A stretch of DNA of 64,000 bases from Oikopleura dioica. Lineage: Eukaryota > Animalia > Chordata. A program made the translations under genes and the position numbers. The notes beneath the pieces are model-generated. The model was not told the DNA's origin. It saw only the letters and a list, made by a program, of their open reading frames with translations, and did no database searches. Numbering within the stretch: position 1 is the stretch's first letter; each line of letters begins with the position of its first letter. The stretch is taken from assembly GCA_907165135.1 (NCBI GenBank), contig OU015566.1, positions 2,852,001-2,916,000 on the forward strand, given 5' to 3'. Below are positions 2,561-48,570 of this stretch, piece by piece.

Positions 2561-3002
2561 TTCTTACGCGTCTTTGTTTCATTTGTGCGGGAAGCGATGA
2601 AAAAGCTCGTAAATTTACCGGATGTCGTGCGATTTATCCGCTTTTTATGATGAGAGCAAAACTATTCGAAAAACAATATGCAAGCAAATTTGTTTTTGAC
2701 TTTATCGCACTTTTTTATTATGCCAGATGATCAGTTTTTTTTATGATTTGTAATCAGGGTGGAAACATGGCGGATTCCCGAAAGATTAGGGCGTTATAAA
2801 CCGTTATTTCACTTTTCTCCAAATAAACTCTTAGAAATATTCACTTTACTTGAAAGACCCGCGCGTTGGTACATTGAATTAAATTGTTAATATTCATAAT
2901 CAAGATTTTTTTTTTACAAATTTATTTGAATTTCGGAGGAGTTCAGGAAGGAAAGTGATTGTCAAGCAGAAAGATGTTCATATTCATTTCTCGAGAGAGC
3001 GA

Positions 3003-3330
3003 TCATTGGGTTTGTTGAGTAACGTTTTCGTCTTGGGGATCCTTGTTTTGGGAGTCGTCGATGTTGGAGGCGTCAGTGGCATCGTCGTTGGCATCGTTGT
3101 TGGCATCGTTGGAATCATCCGACTTCTTCAACTCATCAGGAACAACAACTCGGCCATCCTCACCGACAACAATCGAGTAGGGTGTTCCTCCGAGAGAAGT
3201 TACAAGCTTGGAGATTTCCTCGTTCAAGTCGATAACAGCTTGCAACTCAGGAGCAGTTTGGGCGACCATCTCGATTCTCTGTTTTTTGGGAGGGACTCTT
3301 TTTTTAGTCTGCTGCTCTGCCGGCAGGAGA
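3003..3330 (-). CDS. Short paralog of the 1925-2560 gene with Asp/Asn-rich tail
   Basis: ORF 3003-3269 shares LN..I..L...LGG..Y.I....DG.VVVP.ELK motif; start uncertain. Confidence 0.55.
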
Positions 3331-5930: not shown

Positions 5931-6700
5931 TTAAGGCTATAACGTCCCTTTTGGCCTCTCTGGAAAACGGACTTCCCTTGGTCAATTTCAAAAATTAAAA
6001 AGACTCATATACTTGAAATCTATCGTAGATTTCAGAAATGCGATCAAAAATCAATTTTTCTTTTGAAATTTTGACTTTACAATCATTTAAAAAACGCCGA
6101 TCGGTTTTCCGAAGAATTTTACCATTACAGAGGTAGATTTTTTCGATCAATTGATAGATTAAAGCCTTCTCTACAATCCCCATGGAAAAAATCTTCGATA
6201 TCTCTTCAAATTTTCATTCTAGGGCCATGTTAATGCTGGCACCTGAGGATAAAAATGCGCGTGGACGCGCTGCGCGGAGTGCTATCCTCCAGGCCAAAAA
6301 GAGAGCGCTGTTGGCGAGCGTGTGAGTCAAGCGATTCATCGCGCTCTGATTGGCTGCGCAGATCTCAAGCGTCAGTCTATAAACAAAAGAGTTTTAAAAG
6401 AAGAGAGAACTATAATCATTATTTGGACAATTTCTTGAAATTTTTTCCGTGAGGATTATAGAATTTGCTCTGTTTAATATTATTATCGGATAAATTCTAC
6501 CTCAGAACTTCCAGTTTTCTCGGAAAACCGAATGGCGATTTTTGAATGATTCTAGAGCAAAAATTACCAGAGAAAAGTATTTCTTGATGGAATTTTTAAA
6601 TTTTTTAGGAGAAAACAAGTATGTTTGCCCTTTAAATTTTTGAAATCGACCAAGGGAAGTCCGTTTTCCAGAGAGGCCAAAAGAGACGTTATAGCCTTAA
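5931..6700. repeat. Inverted duplication (arms about 5931-6205 and 6425-6700)
   Basis: 5931-6000 matches the reverse complement of 6631-6700 at 67 of 70 nt; weaker similarity continues inward. Confidence 0.85.
6255..6390 (+). promoter_or_regulatory. Promoter-like cassette (inverted CCAAT box plus TATA box, CpG-rich)
   Basis: CTGATTGG near 6348-6355 and CTATAAA near 6377-6383 in a CG-rich island within AT-rich DNA. Confidence 0.45.
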
Positions 6701-6779
6701 TGGAAAGATATTTTTTGACGTTCTTTCTAAGGAAGAGTATAGTTGAACGAGAGAATCGAAATAAACTTTATAAATTAGC

Positions 6780-33907: not shown

Positions 33908-36500
33908 ATGAAGCTTTTCGCGCTTCTCTCATTGGTTACAGGTTCTTACAGTAATTTTTCTAGCTTACAAAAAAACATCTGAAAATGTCAATGAAACCAT
34001 TATAGCAGTTAAAATTAAAATAATCGCTTCAATTATTCTTTAATCTTTAAGGCTTTCAACAATCGGAGAAAATCGAGCTTGGGCCACCAACATATGATAA
34101 AATTCAGCGGCGTCCTGCCGCGCTATCATCCGAAAGAGACGCTTTTGCTGAAAAAGGAAATGGAAAAGGAAAAACGCCACAATTGTCAGTAAACGATTTG
34201 GACATTGCCAACAGATTACCACGTAAGAAAATACTGATTTGAAGAAACCATAATTTTTTTTCTTCTTTTATGTATCGGATTTTTATTTGAATTATTATTT
34301 ACGATGATTTTTAAAGACCTTGATTATTGATTAGCAATATTCCTCTAGTAACGATGACCCCTTTTTAACAATTATCAAAAATAATCGTTCGACAAACATA
34401 AATTCAGCAAAACTGAAATGCCACACTCCACTGGTGAAAGAAGGACTGGCCGAGCGAATCGTCGGCGGCTACGATGTCCAACGAGAAGCCTGGCCCTTCA
34501 TCGTCAAAATTCGAATCGGCTGCGGCGGGAGCATAATCGCCAGCAACTGGATCCTGACCGCGGCGCATTGTTGCAGGCAGGGCGCGACATCTTTTTTTTC
34601 AATCAGACATTTCTTCGAAAAATGACTCAATCTTCAATGATTCGATTATTTGGTTTGTAGGTCATTAAAGTTGGGACTCCCAAGCTTGCGAAAATTTCAA
34701 ATTGGAAGGCTTTAACTTTAATGACCTATTTCAAATTATCAAAATTAAGGATTGACTCAAGTAACATTGAAAATCATCCAAAATGTCTTGTCGAACCCAT
34801 TTTAAAGAGTTTCAGATAATCGATTCTTGCAAGTGACCGTCAGCGAATTTGATCGAGCGAAAATTGACATGGGAGCCAGGACGATCAATATTAAAGAAAA
34901 ATACCTTCACCCTCAATTCGACCAATTCACCCTCAAAAACGACATTTGCCTCCTCGAGCTCGAAGATTCCATCAACTTTCACGTCTTTGCTCAGCCAGTC
35001 TGTCTGCCAGACAAGGGCTCGAGAATCGACAAAATCCCACTAGGAAAAGGGCCGCTTTGCTACGTCGCCGGCTGGGGGCGAATCGGAGAGATGGAAAATA
35101 CCGCTAGAATTTTGCAAGAAACTCAAGTGCCGATCGTCAACAATACAGTATGCGATGCGGCTTTTCCGAAAAACGAAGTTGTCGAAGATAAAATGATGTG
35201 CGCCGGATATGCAGAGGGAGGAATCGACGCTTGCCAGGGCGATTCTGGAGGACCGCTGATTTGCGTCGAAGATGATAAGCCGATGCTGCGGGGGATCGTT
35301 TCTTGGGGAATTGGATGTGCAAGAGTTGGGCATTACGGCGTTTATACCAGGACATCTTCTTATATCGACTGGGTATTGAAGAGCATTTAATCTTTATGAA
35401 AAAGGCCTTTTTTGAAAAAGAAAAAATAATCAGCCGAGTTTCTAGATAAAATCGATCGTCGTTCCTGATGAAGTCAAAACCACCCTTCCGCCAACAACAA
35501 CGACTACAGAACGAAGTCCCGTTGTCGGCCTCACCAAAATGCATTCCTTCTGCGGTTCGACCCATTTTTCATCCCCTCTTCCCAATCTCATTTTAAGGAA
35601 ATCCGAAGGAAAACTACAAGATAGCAAAAAACGTCCAGGTCGGCTGCAACGAAATCGGATGCAAGTTTTTCTGCCCAAAAAGGATGAAACCTTCTGTCTC
35701 GAAAGTCGGGTGCAATAAGAAGTGGAAGAATTTCGTGCCGAAAAGACTCAAGGTAGGTACTGTTTATAACGCAGGTAGGGACTGAATTCTAGCGACCAAT
35801 TTTCTGCATGGAAGAAAAGAAAAAATCGATCAAAGAAGAGGTCATCCAAAGAGGTAAAAAAAGACAAAATAGATGATGGCTGGAGAAACTGGAGTTCAAA
35901 AGACAAGAGAGTTAATCGAGATTCTGACATTTTTTAGGAAACGAAATGACAAGCTGCGGTAACGTGACGAAAAAGTTCAAATTGCCAGAGTCGATTAATA
36001 TTGACTGCAAAAACGACAAATGCGATCTCACTGTAAGCAAGTTTACCATAAAAAAACTGATGACAAAAAAACTTTTAGTGCGAAAATCCAAACATGGAGC
36101 CTACGCTGTCTCAAATCAAATGCCAGCGATCAACAGGTAAGTCGAAAAAAGGCAAATTTATTCCTAGACGCGCTCGGGTCAACTGCGTCGTGAAGAAAAA
36201 TTCGAAAGCAATGAGATCAATGGGCTCAACTGCCGAAGAAACATGCGGGTACCTTCCTGTCCAGATTGCTCAGCCAGCCAGCTACTTTTGCGAGGACATG
36301 TCCTGCCATTTTTATTGCCCTGATAATCTGACGGTAAAAAATGGAAGCAGAACTACAGTTATAAAGCTGCTTTCAGCCAAATCATGCAAAAATCACTTGC
36401 AATCCTTGGAAGCGATCCTGGTGGCCAAAACGATTCAGCGTTTTCTGTGAATAATTCAAACTCTCAAGCCTCGAAATTGAGCTTTTTCCGAAAAATCTTA
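33908..36500 (+). CDS. Secreted trypsin-like serine protease with Thr-rich linker and three C-terminal Cys-rich repeats
   Basis: Signal MKLFALLSLVT; R-IVGG; TAAHC, NDICLL, DACQGDSGGP; repeats FCGN..GC..GC.FFC, SCGN..DC..KC.LTC, TCGY..FC..SC.FYC; 3' end approximate. Confidence 0.9.
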
Positions 36501-36850: not shown

Positions 36851-39800
36851 ATGAAAGAGATTTCTGAATTATCAGCTGGGAGGCTCCTCCTTTTCGACTC
36901 GATTATCACAAGATGTTCAAAAGATGATATGATTCTAGCGATACGGGTGTATAGAAAGGTGAAGGATCTTATTGGCGAACATCACGAAGGCTGCCTTGAA
37001 GAAGAATTATTCCATGATCTCGAGAAAGAACTTTATCGCATTGACCCAAACAACGAAACACTCTACCTTCCCGGAGGATATGCAGGTTTGACCGGTTCTT
37101 TATTCAGTTGAATCAACATCAATCAAAGGTCTATATTTGGTCATGAATCAAAGCAATCGTGAAAATGAGTTCAAGCCGCAAAACACTGATCCGCATATTT
37201 TCGAGGAACTCATGAAGATTGACATAGAAAATGGTGCCGTTCCAAGCCATTTCAGAGTTGTTGCAAGCTTCACTTACAATTTCTCGATTCTCAAACATTC
37301 TCTATGGGAAGAATGTAAGCTGAAATTTTTTCATAAAAAAAGTGATTAAATTATGTTAAGACACGATGGACTGGGCGTACAATATTGGCGGATACACTAT
37401 TTTCACAGCCCCAAACGAGTTCGTCGTAAGAGTTATCATCGGAAATTGTTCATATTCAAAAGATGAAATTCGCGAAATGCAGCTCTCGAATGATGAAACC
37501 CTTATTTACTTGATAAAAGAAATGCTGAAAGATCTGTCGATTGAGGAGGGGCAAGAAGTTCTTGAGATTCCAACTCAAGTTGGACTGACATTACCTTATT
37601 ACGCCACGCTTTATTATTATGGATGCTCGAGCTTTCTGTTGGAAACATTCCCAAAACTCGAGTTCAACTGCTGCAGCTACTTCAATCAGACTCCCTACAT
37701 CATGTACAAACCACTCATGAAAAAAATACTCCAAAGAGGCTTGAATCCTTTCATTACTCCACATACTTTGCCTTCCTTTGGAAACTTCTTCAACTGGTAC
37801 TTCACGGAATATGCCTTCGACGCGCACGAGGATCTGCAAGATTGCAAACTACAGAAAGATATCTTCTTCATTTCCTCCCCATACATCAAAAACAAAGAAG
37901 AAATCGAGCAACTTGGTCTTTACGATGAGCTGGTTGAAAAATACGTAACCGAATTCGCAGCCGATGGAGCTCCTTTAACAACAACGTACAATTCCTGGTA
38001 CGATATTGCTTGCAACGAAAAGTGTCCCGAAAATTGCAATCAAGCGATTCCATCCCTCCGGTATTTCATTGGCCAGCTCATCGAGAAAACCAACCTCCTC
38101 GGAAATGGCGGGCAAGGATCCGTTTTCGAGTGCACTTGGCATGGAAAAAAGGCGGCAGCGAAATTCATCCCGAATCGACAAATAACTGAAAAGTTGTTCA
38201 AAATCATCAAGGGAGCGCCGCAAAAGCTAATGGACCCGTTGCGCGAAAAAAAGATGCGACAGCTTTTTACAATGCAAGCTTCGGAATTCTACATCGCCAG
38301 GGAAATCAATCATCCTTATGTTTTGCGAATGTTCGATTTTTATCTGCAACATCGAAATGGAAAGGACGAGTTCGTCATTGTCTCGGAGCTCTGCGACACG
38401 ACATTGAGCAAGATCGACTTCAATATGGCTTCCTTTTTGAATTATTTTCTACAGGTCACTTCGGCTATCAAAGCAATCGGAGACCAAAATTTGTCACATG
38501 GCGATGTGAAGCCAGAAAATATCCTGCTGAAGCGAGAGGGCGACACTGGAGCGCTTTCTGTTCGACTTGCAGATTTCGGAATGGCCGGAATTGTCGGAGG
38601 TACACCCTTATTCATGGCGCCTGAGGTGCTGACCAGATCGATTCCTTATGTATCTGATATCTACTCGCTCGGCATGTCGATACTTTTTTCTGTTTACGAC
38701 TTGCAGCTGGCTTTTAAGCTCTTTCTTCTTCCAGGTAAAGCAGTCGAATCCCGTTCGTTTTTGAATTTTCTATTTTTAGTGGACAATGATAGCCTTCGAT
38801 CGGCGAAAAAAATTGTTCAGAAGCATGAATTGACGAAATTCATTTCGAACATGATCTCGGACGATCCAGCTGTCCGGCCTAGCATCCGGGAGGTAAATGA
38901 TTTCTTGACGGTGGAGCAACTTCTTTTCACAGATGAGAGCAAAATCACGATAAGAGATCTTGGAATCAACGATGATTTGGAGGCTTCGGAGACGAGTATT
39001 TCAAATGATCTGAAGAGAAGAGCAGAGGTTTTTGAGAACTGTCCGTTTTCAACGGTGAATATCTTGAGTTCAATCAGTCATTTGACGTCATATGAAGAAT
39101 TATCAAAGGCCGGATAAAACAAGATATAGTCTGAAAACTGAATAATTACGTTATATTCATCCTTAAAAGACGACGAAAATGATCAGCAAAACAATCCATG
39201 ACCAGGTTTAAAAACACTCGAACTATAAGAATTATTCAATAGGGTGATTCTTTCAAATGCTGGGCTTTTTCGACCGCAAGTATGCTTCGATCTTCACTTC
39301 GAGAAATGATCAAAGGCGTCGTTTTGAAACTCAGTTTCTTGATTTTTCGAATATATTTTTTCTAAAACGGCTCAAAAGGATTGGAAAATTTCTCCGATAC
39401 CGCGAAAGAAGGTTGTTTCGCGGTTCTTGATGATCCGTCGCATCACAAGGTTTCAAAGAATATATATTTCGACTTACTGTTTTTTGTAGACGCTTAGATC
39501 TGAGTTGATGATGACCGTGATTCCGACGAAAATCAACGCAAATGAAAGCGAAATTCAAGCAGCGCTTCTCTATCACGTGATGCAAAGACTCGCCAGACCG
39601 ACATTTCTGCAGCGAGAAGGTGCAGTGCTTCATTCCTATAATTAAATTCAACGATTATTGAGGAATTCATCTTCTTGGAAGCCTGAAACCGATACTTGAT
39701 AAGATCGGACAAGTTCAGCCTCTTCTTGAAATATTTTTCCACCCAACGGAATATGACAAAGTATCCGAAAAGCTTAAACAATTCGACGTTGTTGGCGATT

Positions 39801-40042
39801 TCTTCAGTGCTATTGATCAGAAAAAGACCCTCGTCTGCCCGGTCAAGTACGCTCTTTCCTTTTAATTTCAAAAAACGATGATTTTTAGTACTGGATTGGA
39901 AAATATGAAGCATGCAATGTGCTTGTACGGATTTGATGAAGAGGACAAGTCATTCATTTTCAAGAACAGCTCTTCGGAACAGACGACGATCCATGTTCCT
40001 CTCATGTCAAACCAGGTCAAGGTCGACTATTCGTTGAAGTAG
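36851..40042 (+). CDS. Protein kinase fused to a C-terminal papain-like (clan CA) cysteine protease domain, with a large uncharacterised N-terminal region
   Basis: Kinase: GNGGQGSVF, AAKF, HGDVKPEN, ADFG, GTPLFMAPE. GC-AG intron 39109-39169 joins in frame to IHDQ|GDSFKCWAFS ... KHAMCLYGFD..FIFKNS; last exon uncertain. Confidence 0.8.
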
Positions 40043-40765
40043 AAATGAGATGTTGCAGTTTTTTGTCGCTCCCTGACAGATTTTCTTTACAGAACGCGAC
40101 CTTAATTTAGCCAAATCTTGGATATCACATTTCTTTTGTGCAAAAATCTTATTGAAACCGAAAATTTTTTTTAGCTTTTTTCTTGTTCTTTGTCATTTGT
40201 TTGATAATTTATTTGGGAAAATTATTCATTCAATCAATAAAATTCTAGTAAAGAAAATTCTCCACAACTTATTTTTTTAATAATAAATATTATATATAGC
40301 TAGCGCCGTGTGATGAAAAAAGGTTTAGTTAGTGAAATCGATCGTCGGATCTCTTTTCGAAAATCTGGCTTATCCGGCCGCGCAAGTCTAGCGCGCATTA
40401 TATCGATGCAAAAGACGAGATGATCGCCAGGCCCGCCAATTCGCGGCCCCATTCAAAACCTTCATTTTATATTCCTTTCGCATTCATTTTTCGAGAAGAG
40501 AAATTATTGAAAAAACACTTCTGAAATCAAGAAAGACCCCATTTTCTAAGGGAAAAGTCAAGCAATGGGCGCGACGAGCAAAACTTCAAACAAAAAGTCA
40601 TCCCGTTTTGTTCGTTGGCTCATGCTTTTCTTCTCGCTTTTTCTCGACAAAAGTTAAAGCATTTGCATAAAAATTCATTTGCGAAGCAATTTCTGTTCTT
40701 TGTCGCCATAGAAACTAGCCATCAAAACTTCAAGATCTTGAAAACAAAATCAAAGAGAAAGAAAA

Positions 40766-41116
40766 ATGTCGTATCACTACAAAGATTTCAATATGATGTA
40801 CGACAGGAACCTTTTTACGGCTGCCAAAATGGGCGATGTCCAGGTTCGTTGTTTAAAAAATCGGAAAAGTAAAAATTGAAGATGGTAAAAAACCTCCTCG
40901 AAAGTGGATTTCCTGTGAATCATCGGGACAAGTACAATAAAACGGCCCTTCATCATGCTGTGGAAGGGTTGAATTTTGAGTGCGTGAAGATTTTGCTCGC
41001 TCATGGATCCACTCAGAATAGGGTGGGTCACTTTCAGGGTTGGTCTTTCGATTTCGATTTTTGTTTGTAAGATGCTTGTTCTTACCCCAATAAAGAGCTT
41101 TCCATGGAAAACTGAT
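40766..41116 (+). CDS. Small ankyrin-repeat protein
   Basis: LFTAAKMGDVQ|MVKNLLESGFPVNHRDKYNKTALHHAVEGLNFECVKILLAHG; 3' end uncertain. Confidence 0.8.
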
Positions 41117-42607: not shown

Positions 42608-43441
42608 ATGGACGAGGATTTTGTCAAAAAGCGCCTCGAGAAGGATCTCTCTGAATTGAAGAGAATCATCGAGGCTCATTTCATCCAGCGAAAAAAGGAT
42701 GAAGAAGAACTCGAAGAGCTCAAGACCCGAATTGAGAAGCGAAAAGAATACCGAGAGCAGCAGCTCAAGCAGCGAGCCGAGCGAGAACGACTTCGACAGG
42801 AAGCCGAACAGCTCGAAAAGGATCGACGAGCCGCCGAAGAAGGTTTGAAAAGATCGATTCTAGAGGGGTTTCTGACGGATTATTTAAGCCGCTCGAAAAG
42901 AAGAAGAAGAGCGAAAGAAGAAGGAAGCTATGCAGGCTCTTTCTCAATCCTTCGGTGGATACAAAGCTCAAGCAAAACAGGTGAATTCGTTTTTATACAA
43001 ATTGACACCCTTACTCAAAAAAAAAATTTTTTTCAAGAAAAATTTTCGAAGAATTTTGTTGTTCCATCAATACTTTCAGATTTATCTGATCTTTTTTCTA
43101 ACTTATCCCTAGCGAACTGGCCGAGGCGAGCGAGAACGAAAGAAGAAGGTTCTCGCCGAGCGAAGAAAGCCGCTGAACATCGACCATTTGGCCGCCGAAA
43201 AGCTCCTCGAAAAGGTCAAGGATCTTTACGAGCACCTCAACCGAGTCGAATCCGAACGGTAGGACTCTCTTCTCATCGCTCCCGCAATATTCTTTCAGAT
43301 GCGATTTCGAGCAGAAACAGAACCACCACAAGTACTACGTTACGATGCACCGCGCCCGCGTCAACCAGGTCATGTCGCAGCTTTCCAAAAAGAAGAAGTA
43401 ACTTTTTCTCACGATTTTATTCTGACCTCTCTAGGTGTTGA
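42608..43441 (+). CDS. TNNT: Troponin T
   Basis: [40 protein letters not shown]; [14 protein letters not shown]; [19 protein letters not shown]; an upstream exon may exist. Confidence 0.92.
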
Positions 43442-45315: not shown

Positions 45316-46115
45316 ATGAAGGTAAGGCGAATTCGATAAAAAACGTATCTAGAGAATATTCATATAAATCTTAGTTCGCCGCAGGAATCCTCGCCGCCAC
45401 CAATGCCCTGTCCCCCGTTCCCGTCATCATCGGCGGCAGCATTGTCAAGCCCAACTCTGAGCCATACATCCTCTCTCTCCAGCGAAGTGGATCCCACTTC
45501 TGCGGTGGCTCCCTCGGCACTTTCGTCTCCAAGGGTATCACCGCCGCCCACTGCTTCTATAACAGTGGCGTCACCGCCGTCGCAGGTGCTCACAACATTC
45601 GAGTCAACGAGAACACCACCCAGAAAAGAACCGTTTCTACTTTCCGACGACACCCCAACTACAACAGCCGAACTTTGATCAACGACATCGCTGTTCTTCT
45701 CTTCTCCTCCGCCTTCACCGTCGACACCTACGTCACTCCAATCTCCCTCCCTCCTCACAGAAACGAGGAATGGATGCCAAACGGCGCTCAGGTCCGAGTC
45801 TGCGGCTGGGGCAACACCTCGACCTCTGGATCCGCTTACCCAAGCGAACTCCACTGCGTCAATGTCAACATCATCTCCAACGACATCTGCAACACCAAAG
45901 ACCGATACGACGGAGAGATCCTAAAGGGAATGTTCTGCGCCGGTATCTTGGATGTCGGAGGCAAAGACGCTTGCCAGGGTGATTCTGGTGGACCAGTTAC
46001 CTACAACAACCAGGTCGTCGGTGCCACCTCCTGGGGATACGGCTGCGCTCAGGCAAAATACCCAGGTGTCTACACTGATGTCGCCATGTTCAAGAACTGG
46101 ATTGATGCCCAATAA
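45316..46115 (+). CDS. Trypsin (digestive type)
   Basis: ATG AAG, intron, signal; IIGG, CGGSL, TAAHC, NDIAVL, DACQGDSGGP, YPGVYT; strongly C-ending codon usage. Confidence 0.95.
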
Positions 46116-46328: not shown

Positions 46329-48570
46329 TTATTGCGGTTTCAGTTGATCCAAGATTGCGAAAACCTGGCGCCGAAGTTCCTTGAAAAAAATTTACAGAGA
46401 ATCAAGTGCGTTTTCTTACGTTTGAGTCCATATAGCCAGCTTTGCCTTTTGGTCCGTTAGCGCCAGGCATTCCCTTAATTCCACAGCGACCAGATTTTCC
46501 AGGTGGCCCTTGTCGTCCGCAATCACCAGGTTCTCCGGATGACCCGGGAAGTCCTTTGGGTCCTTGCTCTCCGGCTGGTCCTTTCTCGCCTCTCGGTCCG
46601 TGAGCTCCATGATCAGCGAGTTTGCCCGGTTCACCTTTTGGTCCTGGGAAGCCTGGTTGACCATCGCGACCGGGAACACCCATCGGGCCGACGGGACCAA
46701 TTGGACCTTGTTCACCGGGAAGACCATCTTCACCAGTGCAACCGCTTTCACCGCGTTTTCCTGAATGAGAAAAACTAAGAAGAGTTTCAAAGTCAAGACT
46801 CGATGGTAGCAAGAAAAGAAAAGAAACGCTCTCAAATTCACTCGTCAGCAGGAGTAACACAAGTCCGTCGCGTGGATAACCCGGATCAAGGGCAAAGCCG
46901 CAGCTGGAGTTTTGCATTTCAGGCTGAAGTCTACTCCGCGGGATCAAGCAACGATTACAACTTGTGAAATTCCTGGAACAAGGAGCCCTTGTGTAACACT
47001 TATGTGCTTTTATTACCTTGTTCGCCAGGAACACCGGCGGGTCCTCGCTCGCCCTGGCAACCAGTAGGAAGGGGGCATTTGCAGTCGCAGTGGATTTGCT
47101 CTTTTTCGCGCTTGGGGCACAAGCTGATTACGTTGTCGACGAATGTTTTTGCTGCCCATGCATCTGTGTACCTAAAAATCGGGACAAAGGGTTTCGGGGG
47201 AAAAATCCTACTTGTCAATATGCGGGTCATTTCCATTCAGATATCTCAGCGTAGCAGCCCGTTTCTTGCAAATTTCAACTGCTTGAGCAGAAGTCATGTG
47301 CGCAGCACACTCATTTTCCGTCATGATAGAATGGTCTCCTCGGGCGATTGTATGGACATCAACCTAAAAACGAGTTTCCACGAGCAAAGGAGGGGAGAAT
47401 ACCTCCATGGCGTCATGGAGCAGTTTCATTGCCCCTTTGATGTCAGCCACGGAAACAGATGGGTGATTGTAGCCGTCTGTGATTGTTAGCAAAACTCTTC
47501 AAAAAAGCAAAATTATCAATAAGCAATTATTCTAGGAGGACATACCGTTTTGAGTTTTCTCTTGCGTCGGCAAAATTTTCAATCACATTTTTCAGTCCAT
47601 TTGTAACGTAGCTTCCTTGAGCAACAAACTTGTCCATTTCCAGATTTCTCGCTTTGTTGATCAGCATATCTGGAATGTAGCTCGCTGCTTCGACGAAATT
47701 CGTAACGACTTCTGTATCTTTTGAGTATTGGATGATGCTGATTCGTGCCTTTTCGGGCCCAATTCCGAAATCGCGGTCGATTTTTTTGATCATTGTCTTT
47801 TACCGAGTTTCAAAGGAGAAAAATTTTTGAAAAAGTGGAACTTTGAGAAACGGTCCTGAAGGTAGCTTTTCATCGCGTTCCAGACATCGATGGAACAGCT
47901 ACAGACATCGACGAGAACAGCAATGTCAAGTTCGCAAGGCAATGGCGGCTCCTTAATTTTAAGGAAAAGGGGGGTCATTTGAGCCATAAATTTGAGATTT
48001 TCTCGCTTTACCTGAACACAGTCGCAGGAGCAATCCTCCTCCTTTTTCATTTCCGCGGTGCACGTTTGCATTTCCGGCTCGCAGATCGGAATATGAGGAG
48101 AGCAGATTTCATCCCTCTCAAAGTCCGAATCATCAAAAGAATCCGAACTGGAGACACTGGACACCACTGGCCCGTGCGATGAAAAATCCTTAAATGTCAC
48201 AGGGACAAAACTCGAGTAGTCGGAAGAAAATGACTCTGGATCGTCGTTTTGAATGTCTATTTGGTGGATTCTTTTTCGCCTTGTGATTTTGCCGCCGTTT
48301 TGGAGGAGTCCATGAGCGAGGCCGATTTGCAAACAAGCCTAAATTGAAGAAGTTCTCGAATGAAAATAGTCTCTTTCTCTCACCGTAATTTTCATGATCT
48401 TGACTTCTCGAAATCGCCGAAAAAAGTGAAATGAAAGAGATTGAGCCCAGTGCCAAGGGTTCAACCTCAAAGCGATCGTAAAAGGTATTTTTGGACGGGA
48501 AGTTGATTGAAGCCGGTAATAAACGGGACTTTTTGAATTTTGACTCGTCGGTTTTACGGGAAGTGAGGAT
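46329..48570 (-). CDS. VWA domain plus short triple-helix collagen (FACIT/COL21-like architecture)
   Basis: VWA: LDIAVLVDVCSCS, ARISIIQYS, ITDG; CDCKC then Gly-X-Y exons; C-terminal ELRRQVFAILDQLKPQ*; start unresolved. Confidence 0.8.

Follow-up and report, generated by a model that had tools for sequence, protein, structure and literature searches.

Two kinds of described proteins are among the closest to the gene considered here. In IRE1 and RNase L, nucleotide binding and dimerisation of a kinase module switch the effector. Calpains, which carry a Q-G-x-x-G-D-C-W motif, are regulated signalling proteases that work in the cytosol without a secretion signal. Here we describe a locus of Oikopleura dioica in which a protein kinase and a papain-fold cysteine protease appear to be joined in one polypeptide. 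It lies at 36851–40155 on the forward strand of a 64,000-nucleotide (nt) stretch of contig OU015566.1 (assembly GCA_907165135.1, positions 2,852,001 to 2,916,000), referred to as the window; unless noted otherwise, all features are on that strand. The locus is likely an 11-exon gene whose predicted product is a cytosolic protein of 929 residues in three parts, namely an N-terminal region, a non-RD kinase and a papain-fold domain, fused by cis-splicing. Each domain is familiar by itself, and our searches turned up neither a described family nor a Pfam model or paper in which a kinase and a papain-fold cysteine protease are covalently linked; literature searches for this architecture and for the Oikopleura kinome returned nothing pertinent. 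A previous sequence-only reading of the window stated that no characterised animal protein is known to combine a kinase with a papain domain, which agrees with our Pfam, NCBIfam and literature searches.

Four copies of the gene form an orthologous group, consisting of the window gene, a copy on contig L001 from a metagenome and a tandem pair at locus L003 of the O. dioica Okinawa genome (OKI2018_I69). L004 and L005 are also Okinawa loci, and L002, L006 and L007 are metagenome contigs. A naive open reading frame (ORF) through the kinase (37366–39117) closes at a TAA (39115–39117), where the sequence-only reading had also seen it halt. This TAA is contained in a phase-0 GC-AG intron of 61 nt (39109–39169), and comparison of the junction among copies makes it likely that kinase and protease are joined by cis-splicing of this intron. 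Alternatively, the locus could hold two operon genes, with the kinase ending at the TAA and a protease mRNA trans-spliced at the AG at 39168–39169 and translated from the ATG at 39179, either as the sole product or as an isoform beside the fusion. Operons are numerous in O. dioica; they are defined by an intercistronic distance of no more than 60 bp and use one spliced leader (PMC7986045), which suits a reading as two genes. The stop is separated from the acceptor by 52 nt and the ATG follows 9 nt after the acceptor, which fits the operon pattern and counts against a fusion. The Okinawa annotation presents the orthologous locus as two models, and in an AlphaFold2 model of the domain from a paralogue, described below, the residues before M-I-S-R form a low-confidence helix for which the fold has no obvious need.

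The comparison of copies argues against two genes. At the junction, the 5′ end of the intron (AAG/GCCGGAT, the slash marking the splice site) and its acceptor (AAG/ACNACNAAA) are conserved in all four orthologous copies, and the interior is unalignable, with intron lengths of 61, 75, 68 and 94 nt. The three codons between acceptor and ATG, ACN-ACN-AAA, differ among copies at third positions only, i.e. by silent changes. The ATG itself is kept in the window, in L001 and in L003 copy b. In L003 copy a it is replaced by GCG and the next in-frame Met falls past the catalytic Cys, yet the tail of this copy is under purifying selection, with a ratio of nonsynonymous to synonymous substitution rates (dN/dS) of 0.11–0.12 against both other copies; therefore, an active domain would be possible in copy a only if it is spliced to the kinase. 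The window tail is likewise under purifying selection (dN/dS of 0.10–0.12 against the two O. dioica L003 copies). In three Okinawa paralogues, two in L004 and one in L005, R-R-A-A-K-F-...-E-L-S-K runs directly into M-I-S-R/H-T-I-H-D-Q within a single ORF with neither stop nor intron, and in distant homologues the junction also lies within one ORF. Thus, a start codon of its own after the acceptor, as an independent operon gene would have in every functional copy, is lacking in L003 copy a, and in the paralogues the site lies inside one ORF. The division of the Okinawa locus can be attributed to mis-annotation and provides no evidence for two genes, as the downstream model, P0121, is without the catalytic Cys exon. 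We therefore regard two operon genes as quite unlikely, though a trans-spliced protease-only mRNA may exist beside the fusion, and a single chain of kinase and papain-fold protease, as the sequence-only reading had proposed, is supported by both the comparative and the structural evidence. Scans of the junction for bacterial promoters and terminators yielded nothing; such signals have no relevance to a eukaryote.

The spliced model comprises 2790 nt and is free of internal stops. Seven tail exons drawn from three reading frames join as one open frame, and their boundaries are the same in relatives, with seven of seven shared by both L003 copies and the first three by L001, where the contig stops; together with the tail dN/dS of 0.10–0.12, the shared boundaries imply that the exon chain is not due to chance. 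The resulting domain of about 215 residues displays a Gln (H-D-Q), the Cys at 39258–39260, the His at 39911–39913 and the Asn at 39965–39967 in C1 order. Most of this had been anticipated: a script rebuild reproduced the six tail introns of the sequence-only reading, the positions of the Cys, His and Asn codons, the two GC-AG introns (the phase-0 junction intron and 39316–39378), the exon chain 39170–39205, 39243–39315, 39379–39449, 39490–39619, 39663–39846 and 39889–40042 (648 nt, 0 internal stops) and the clan CA motifs Q-G-D-S-F-K-C-W-A-F-S, H-A-M-C-L-Y-G-F and F-K-N-S in that order. The gene end had been misplaced at 40042. The true end is at 40155, reached through a last intron at 40016–40110 (GT-AG, 95 nt, phase 0, GTCAAG...TTTAG) and exon 11 (40111–40155), which encodes P-N-L-G-Y-H-I-S-F-V-Q-K-S-Y followed by TGA; the nine terminal residues and the stop (40040–40042) of the earlier model are intron read-through. 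The ends of all related copies carry a P-x-L/I/V-G-Y-H-I-S/C-F motif that is absent from the earlier tail. Among the O. dioica copies and several metagenome fragments, G-Y-H-I-S/C-F occurs in P0005, P0006, P0121, P0122, P0127 and the two L003 copies, and P0128 and P0129 depart from it by one residue.

In searches with single tail sequences, the sole hints were of papain type and stayed below threshold (Pfam E 0.085; ervatamin C in the PDB, E 2.2), and window exons 8–10 scanned alone had no Pfam C1 match. A family profile that contained no window sequence scored the window tail at 174.9 bits (E 7.7e-56, residues 705–926). In the family alignment (A5) the Cys is invariant (103/103) and the Trp that follows it (101/104), the Gln (90/102) and the His (20/23) are nearly so. 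When the profile was compared with PDB sequences, cathepsins B, K and S headed the list at non-significant values (E 0.09–2). To obtain a structure, residues 235–474 of the Okinawa paralogue P0006 were folded with AlphaFold2 using a 124-sequence alignment, resulting in a mean predicted local distance difference test score (pLDDT) of 85.3 and a predicted template modelling score of 0.84. This run replaced an earlier one with a 16-row alignment (pLDDT 57, uninformative Foldseek matches), and short exon-fragment pieces misplaced in alignments A1–A3 were dropped. In an all-against-representatives structure search the top 13 matches were all C1 peptidases (Z 9.8–11.7, 165–177 residues aligned, root-mean-square deviation 3.4–4.3 Å), in line with the papain fold that had been predicted for the tail. 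The best match was xylellain (Z 11.7, 174 residues, 3.5 Å), followed by Der f 1, Der p 1, cathepsins X, C and B, calotropain, falcipain-3, caricain, rhodesain, two parasite cathepsin B zymogens and Blo t 1; after the C1 peptidases came other clan CA families, namely C39-like peptidases, Cwp84, staphopain and ATG4. In the paralogue model the helix 34–53 opens with Cys34, the His starts a strand and the Asn ends the strand that follows.

Several observations speak against a papain-like assignment. The folded sequence is that of a paralogue 58% identical to the window tail and not the window protein itself, and Foldseek alone returned weak matches for its model. On the paralogue domain, Pfam Peptidase_C1 stayed below its gathering cut-off and covered the Cys region only (13.4 versus 20.7 bits), and a second C1 model was also sub-threshold (11.8 versus 22 bits; the models tested were PF00112 and PF03051). 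The Trp of the Asn-Ser-Trp motif is absent, the window tail having N-S-S. No Pfam model covers the tail domain, an NCBIfam scan found no model for it, and alignment A5 contains no conserved cysteines at C1 disulfide positions. On balance, the modelled structure and the order of the catalytic residues support the tail being a divergent papain-fold domain of clan CA, C1-like and outside Pfam-defined C1.

The activity hosted by this fold could differ from that of a general peptidase. If the fusion is real, the tail might employ its Cys-His-Asn set as a ubiquitin or ubiquitin-like isopeptidase, an amidase or a transferase. Such activities do occur on the papain fold, and the structure matches include ATG4 (Z 9.2), UfSP (7.3), ZUFSP (6.9), phytochelatin synthase (8.9) and C39 peptidases (9.8); the tail also lacks a C1 propeptide, as well as the Trp mentioned above. 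The 13 best structure matches and the motifs Q-x5-C-W-A-F, H-A-M and K-N-S favour C1 over any deubiquitinase family, and we consider these other activities, the ubiquitin-like isopeptidase above all, a serious but less likely alternative. A reading of the tail as a decaying or catalytically inert remnant, such as a binding-only pseudo-protease, or as a chance chain of exons is highly improbable. Its high divergence and the lack of a Pfam match above threshold would be expected of a remnant, whereas the single open frame across seven exons, the dN/dS of about 0.1, the conservation of the Cys, Gln, Trp and His and the strength of the profile match all point the other way. We thus return to a C1-like domain fused to a kinase. 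Considering that the tail domain is internal to the 929-residue chain, behind the kinase, and that neither a signal peptide nor a propeptide can be read from the sequence, the protein would be cytosolic; both predicted domains would be active enzymes.

The kinase domain matches Pfam Pkinase (PF00069) with 101.7 bits against a gathering cut-off of 31.7 (5.9e-29), covering profile positions 2–257 of 263. The kinase is divergent and of Ser/Thr type, with its catalytic residues complete, in agreement with the sequence-only reading, to which the kinase motifs also looked intact: the glycine-rich loop (G-x-G-x-x-G) reads G-N-G-G-Q-G, the Lys is in A-A-A-K, the αC Glu is in A-S-E-F, and H-G-D-V-K-P-E-N, D-F-G and A-P-E follow. 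The Arg of the H-R-D motif is Gly in the window kinase (H-G-D), which classifies it as a non-RD kinase. In relatives the catalytic loop reads H-R-D (Okinawa paralogues P0005 and P0006) or H-R-N (P0203). The nearest solved kinases are of the CDPK/CAMK type and match at 1e-12 only, suggesting an orphan kinase branch. Within the family, the kinase region aligns with P0005 and P0006 at E values of 2.6e-57 and 6.3e-57, and with P0203 over a stretch that starts at a Cys motif and takes in the kinase (E 1e-25). This motif, W-x-C-x3-C-x3-C, is immediately N-terminal of the kinase, is common to P0203 and P0205, and terminates an N-terminal region of about 380 residues that is conserved in the family; a Pfam scan of these residues matched no family. 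On the other side of the kinase, a linker of about 45 residues leads to the protease domain. In the metagenome copy on L002, the kinase is interrupted behind F-L-Q by an intron (2975–3014) that is absent from the window, and its catalytic-loop His is Gln (Q-G-D).

In the gene model, exon 1 (36851–37085) begins with the ATG at 36851, opens the conserved N-terminal region and translates cleanly; tblastx conservation against five related loci starts at about 36854. Exon 2 (37129–37314), flanked by the GT-AG introns 37086–37128 and 37315–37360, continues the N-terminal region with 71–79% identity to the orthologous copies in L001, L002 and L003. Exon 3 (37361–38734) encodes the rest of this region, including G-L-N-P-F and the W-x-C-x3-C-x3-C motif, and most of the kinase domain. 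It is followed by a GT-AG intron of 45 nt (38735–38779, GTAAAG...TTTTAG) inside the long kinase ORF. This intron is in frame and has no stop, so it is invisible on an ORF track; at the same site a frame change is found in L001 and L003 copy b, and stop codons in L004 and L005. Exon 4 (38780–39108) supplies the end of the kinase C-lobe and the linker (R-R-A-x-x-F-x-N-C-P-F-S ... E-L-S-K), which is conserved in all copies. Beyond the junction intron, exon 5 (39170–39205) encodes T-T-K-M-I-S-K-T-I-H-D-Q with the oxyanion-hole Gln and is separated by a 37-nt intron (39206–39242) from exon 6 (39243–39315), which carries the catalytic Cys in G-D-S-F-K-C-W-A-F-S. The second GC-AG intron (39316–39378, 63 nt) precedes exon 7 (39379–39449), which encodes a helical insert of the L-domain, and a 40-nt intron (39450–39489) leads to exon 8 (39490–39619). 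The latter contains L-R-S-E-L-M-M-x-V-I-P-T-K, the best-conserved block of the family, and is 81–84% identical to the L003 copies. A 43-nt intron (39620–39662), exon 9 (39663–39846), which is part of the rebuilt open frame, and a 42-nt intron (39847–39888) come before exon 10 (39889–40015) with the catalytic His and Asn. Introns of the gene span 37–95 nt.

At the second non-canonical intron the window has GC-AG, and the other three orthologous copies have GA-AG in matching position and phase (L001 4015–4076, L003 1995–2056 and L003 5967–6028); in all four, AAAG precedes the donor and AAAG stands at the acceptor. Abundant GA-AG and other non-GT introns have been reported in O. dioica (PMC7072748). 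A GT donor at 39318 was tried for this intron and rejected, as the resulting frame meets a stop in the next exon. The Okinawa model P0121 (chr1.g3426), with a tail 73% identical to that of the window, is probably the orthologue of the window tail; it begins past the Cys exon, and the kinase upstream forms a separate model. The catalytic Cys exon of this orthologue is present at L003 5894–5965 and is unannotated (the locus, on Okinawa chr1, also includes 6001–6779). The kinase model upstream of P0121, with 1480 residues, appears to combine an entire fusion gene with the kinase that follows. The GC-AG and GA-AG introns are the probable source of these annotation errors. Where such introns occur, automatic annotation divides or shortens the genes of this family, which is consequently under-counted in current gene sets. 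In another Okinawa model, P0005 (chr2.g4886; L005 3001–9459), a kinase-protease gene is fused with a downstream seven-transmembrane receptor (Pfam 7tm_1), which is probably a chimeric prediction.

The closest named proteins come from O. dioica Okinawa OKI2018_I69 and are only 44–75% identical, which places the window in a lineage or species distinct from Okinawa; with introns of 37–95 nt, the window resembles larvacean tunicate DNA. P0005 and P0006 (PAR.g11741) belong to the same family as the window gene and are already annotated as kinase-protease fusions. Unlike the window model, P0005, P0006 and P0121 are unnamed predictions, and P0006 begins mid-kinase. The window gene itself, the only kinase-protease copy in the 64 kb, belongs to the Oikopleura family of kinases with a papain-fold domain, as indicated by the profile match and a shared order of domains. 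When a word index of homologues was searched with region 470–700 of P0005, P0005 alone was recovered. In an exhaustive profile search, distant metagenome relatives were found in which Pkinase is followed by the tail domain in single uninterrupted ORFs (P0205 with 640 residues, P0203 with 659 residues, P0157/P0240 and P0216). On L006 (10001–11923, 15877–17316) and L007 (2331–4310, 9456–9899), the kinase-protease genes lack introns and have additional kinase ORFs close by; L006 carries a second tandem kinase ORF. Both contigs are sparsely coding and eukaryotic in appearance, and kinase-protease genes accompanied by extra kinase ORFs imply that the family is repeated in at least one other organism. 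The window gene is thus an intact member of a large multi-copy family without a described name, Pfam model or paper. The multiple copies and purifying selection in a chordate, together with the single ORFs in other eukaryotes represented by metagenome contigs, argue for a real, selected function.

Among the neighbouring genes, exons of trypsin-like serine proteases (G-D-S-G-G-P) flank the locus at a distance, at 34827–35390 and 45675–46115. Downstream, an ankyrin-repeat-like ORF (40876–41070), a highly charged, Glu/Arg/Lys-rich ORF of coiled-coil type (42608–43441) and, on the reverse strand, a collagen-like Gly-x-y ORF (46402–47034) were observed. No functional link between the neighbouring ORFs in the window and the kinase-protease gene is apparent.

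If the analogy with IRE1 and RNase L applies, the kinase module might switch the C-terminal hydrolase upon nucleotide binding, autophosphorylation or dimerisation; alternatively, the protease might couple the two activities by cutting the linker or a bound substrate. The family may serve a lineage-specific signalling role or a role in conflict or immunity, as suggested by its tandem expansion and fast divergence, and the protein could act as a phosphorylation-gated protease in defence or cell death. If kinase and protease activities are indeed coupled, they would constitute a new wiring of phosphorylation to proteolysis. A more far-reaching and doubtful proposal is that the family represents a new class of single-chain kinase-protease switches, arranged in tandem arrays in larvaceans and intronless in other eukaryotes, in which a non-RD kinase would gate, or be released by, a cytosolic papain-fold protease, serving as an innate-immune or cell-death effector with a logic like that of IRE1, RNase L and paracaspases.

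Compared with known systems, the tail domain resembles the C1 peptidases (cathepsins B, K, S and X, Der p 1, xylellain) in its modelled two-lobe papain fold, in the Q-x5-C-W-A-F motif with the Cys opening the central helix, in the positions of the His at a strand start and of the Asn on the next strand (K-N-S), and in a G-Y-x-x-x strand near the C-terminus. It differs from them in having no signal peptide, no I29-type propeptide and no conserved disulfide cysteines, in a helical insert after the catalytic helix, in N-S-S in place of N-S-W, in its fusion behind a kinase and in scoring below the PF00112 and PF03051 thresholds. Like bleomycin hydrolase/PepC (C1B) and the calpains (C2), it appears to be a papain-fold cysteine peptidase without a secretion signal. 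Unlike calpains, the window protein has no calcium-binding or C2-like domains, and no calpain is among the matches listed; unlike PepC, it has no C-terminal tail of the hexameric PepC type, and PepW ranks 46th (Z 6.8). As in IRE1 and RNase L, a kinase-fold module is placed directly upstream of a hydrolytic effector in one chain. In contrast to these proteins, whose effector is a KEN ribonuclease, the predicted effector has a cysteine peptidase fold; the sequences are unrelated, and the likeness in coupling is one of analogy only.

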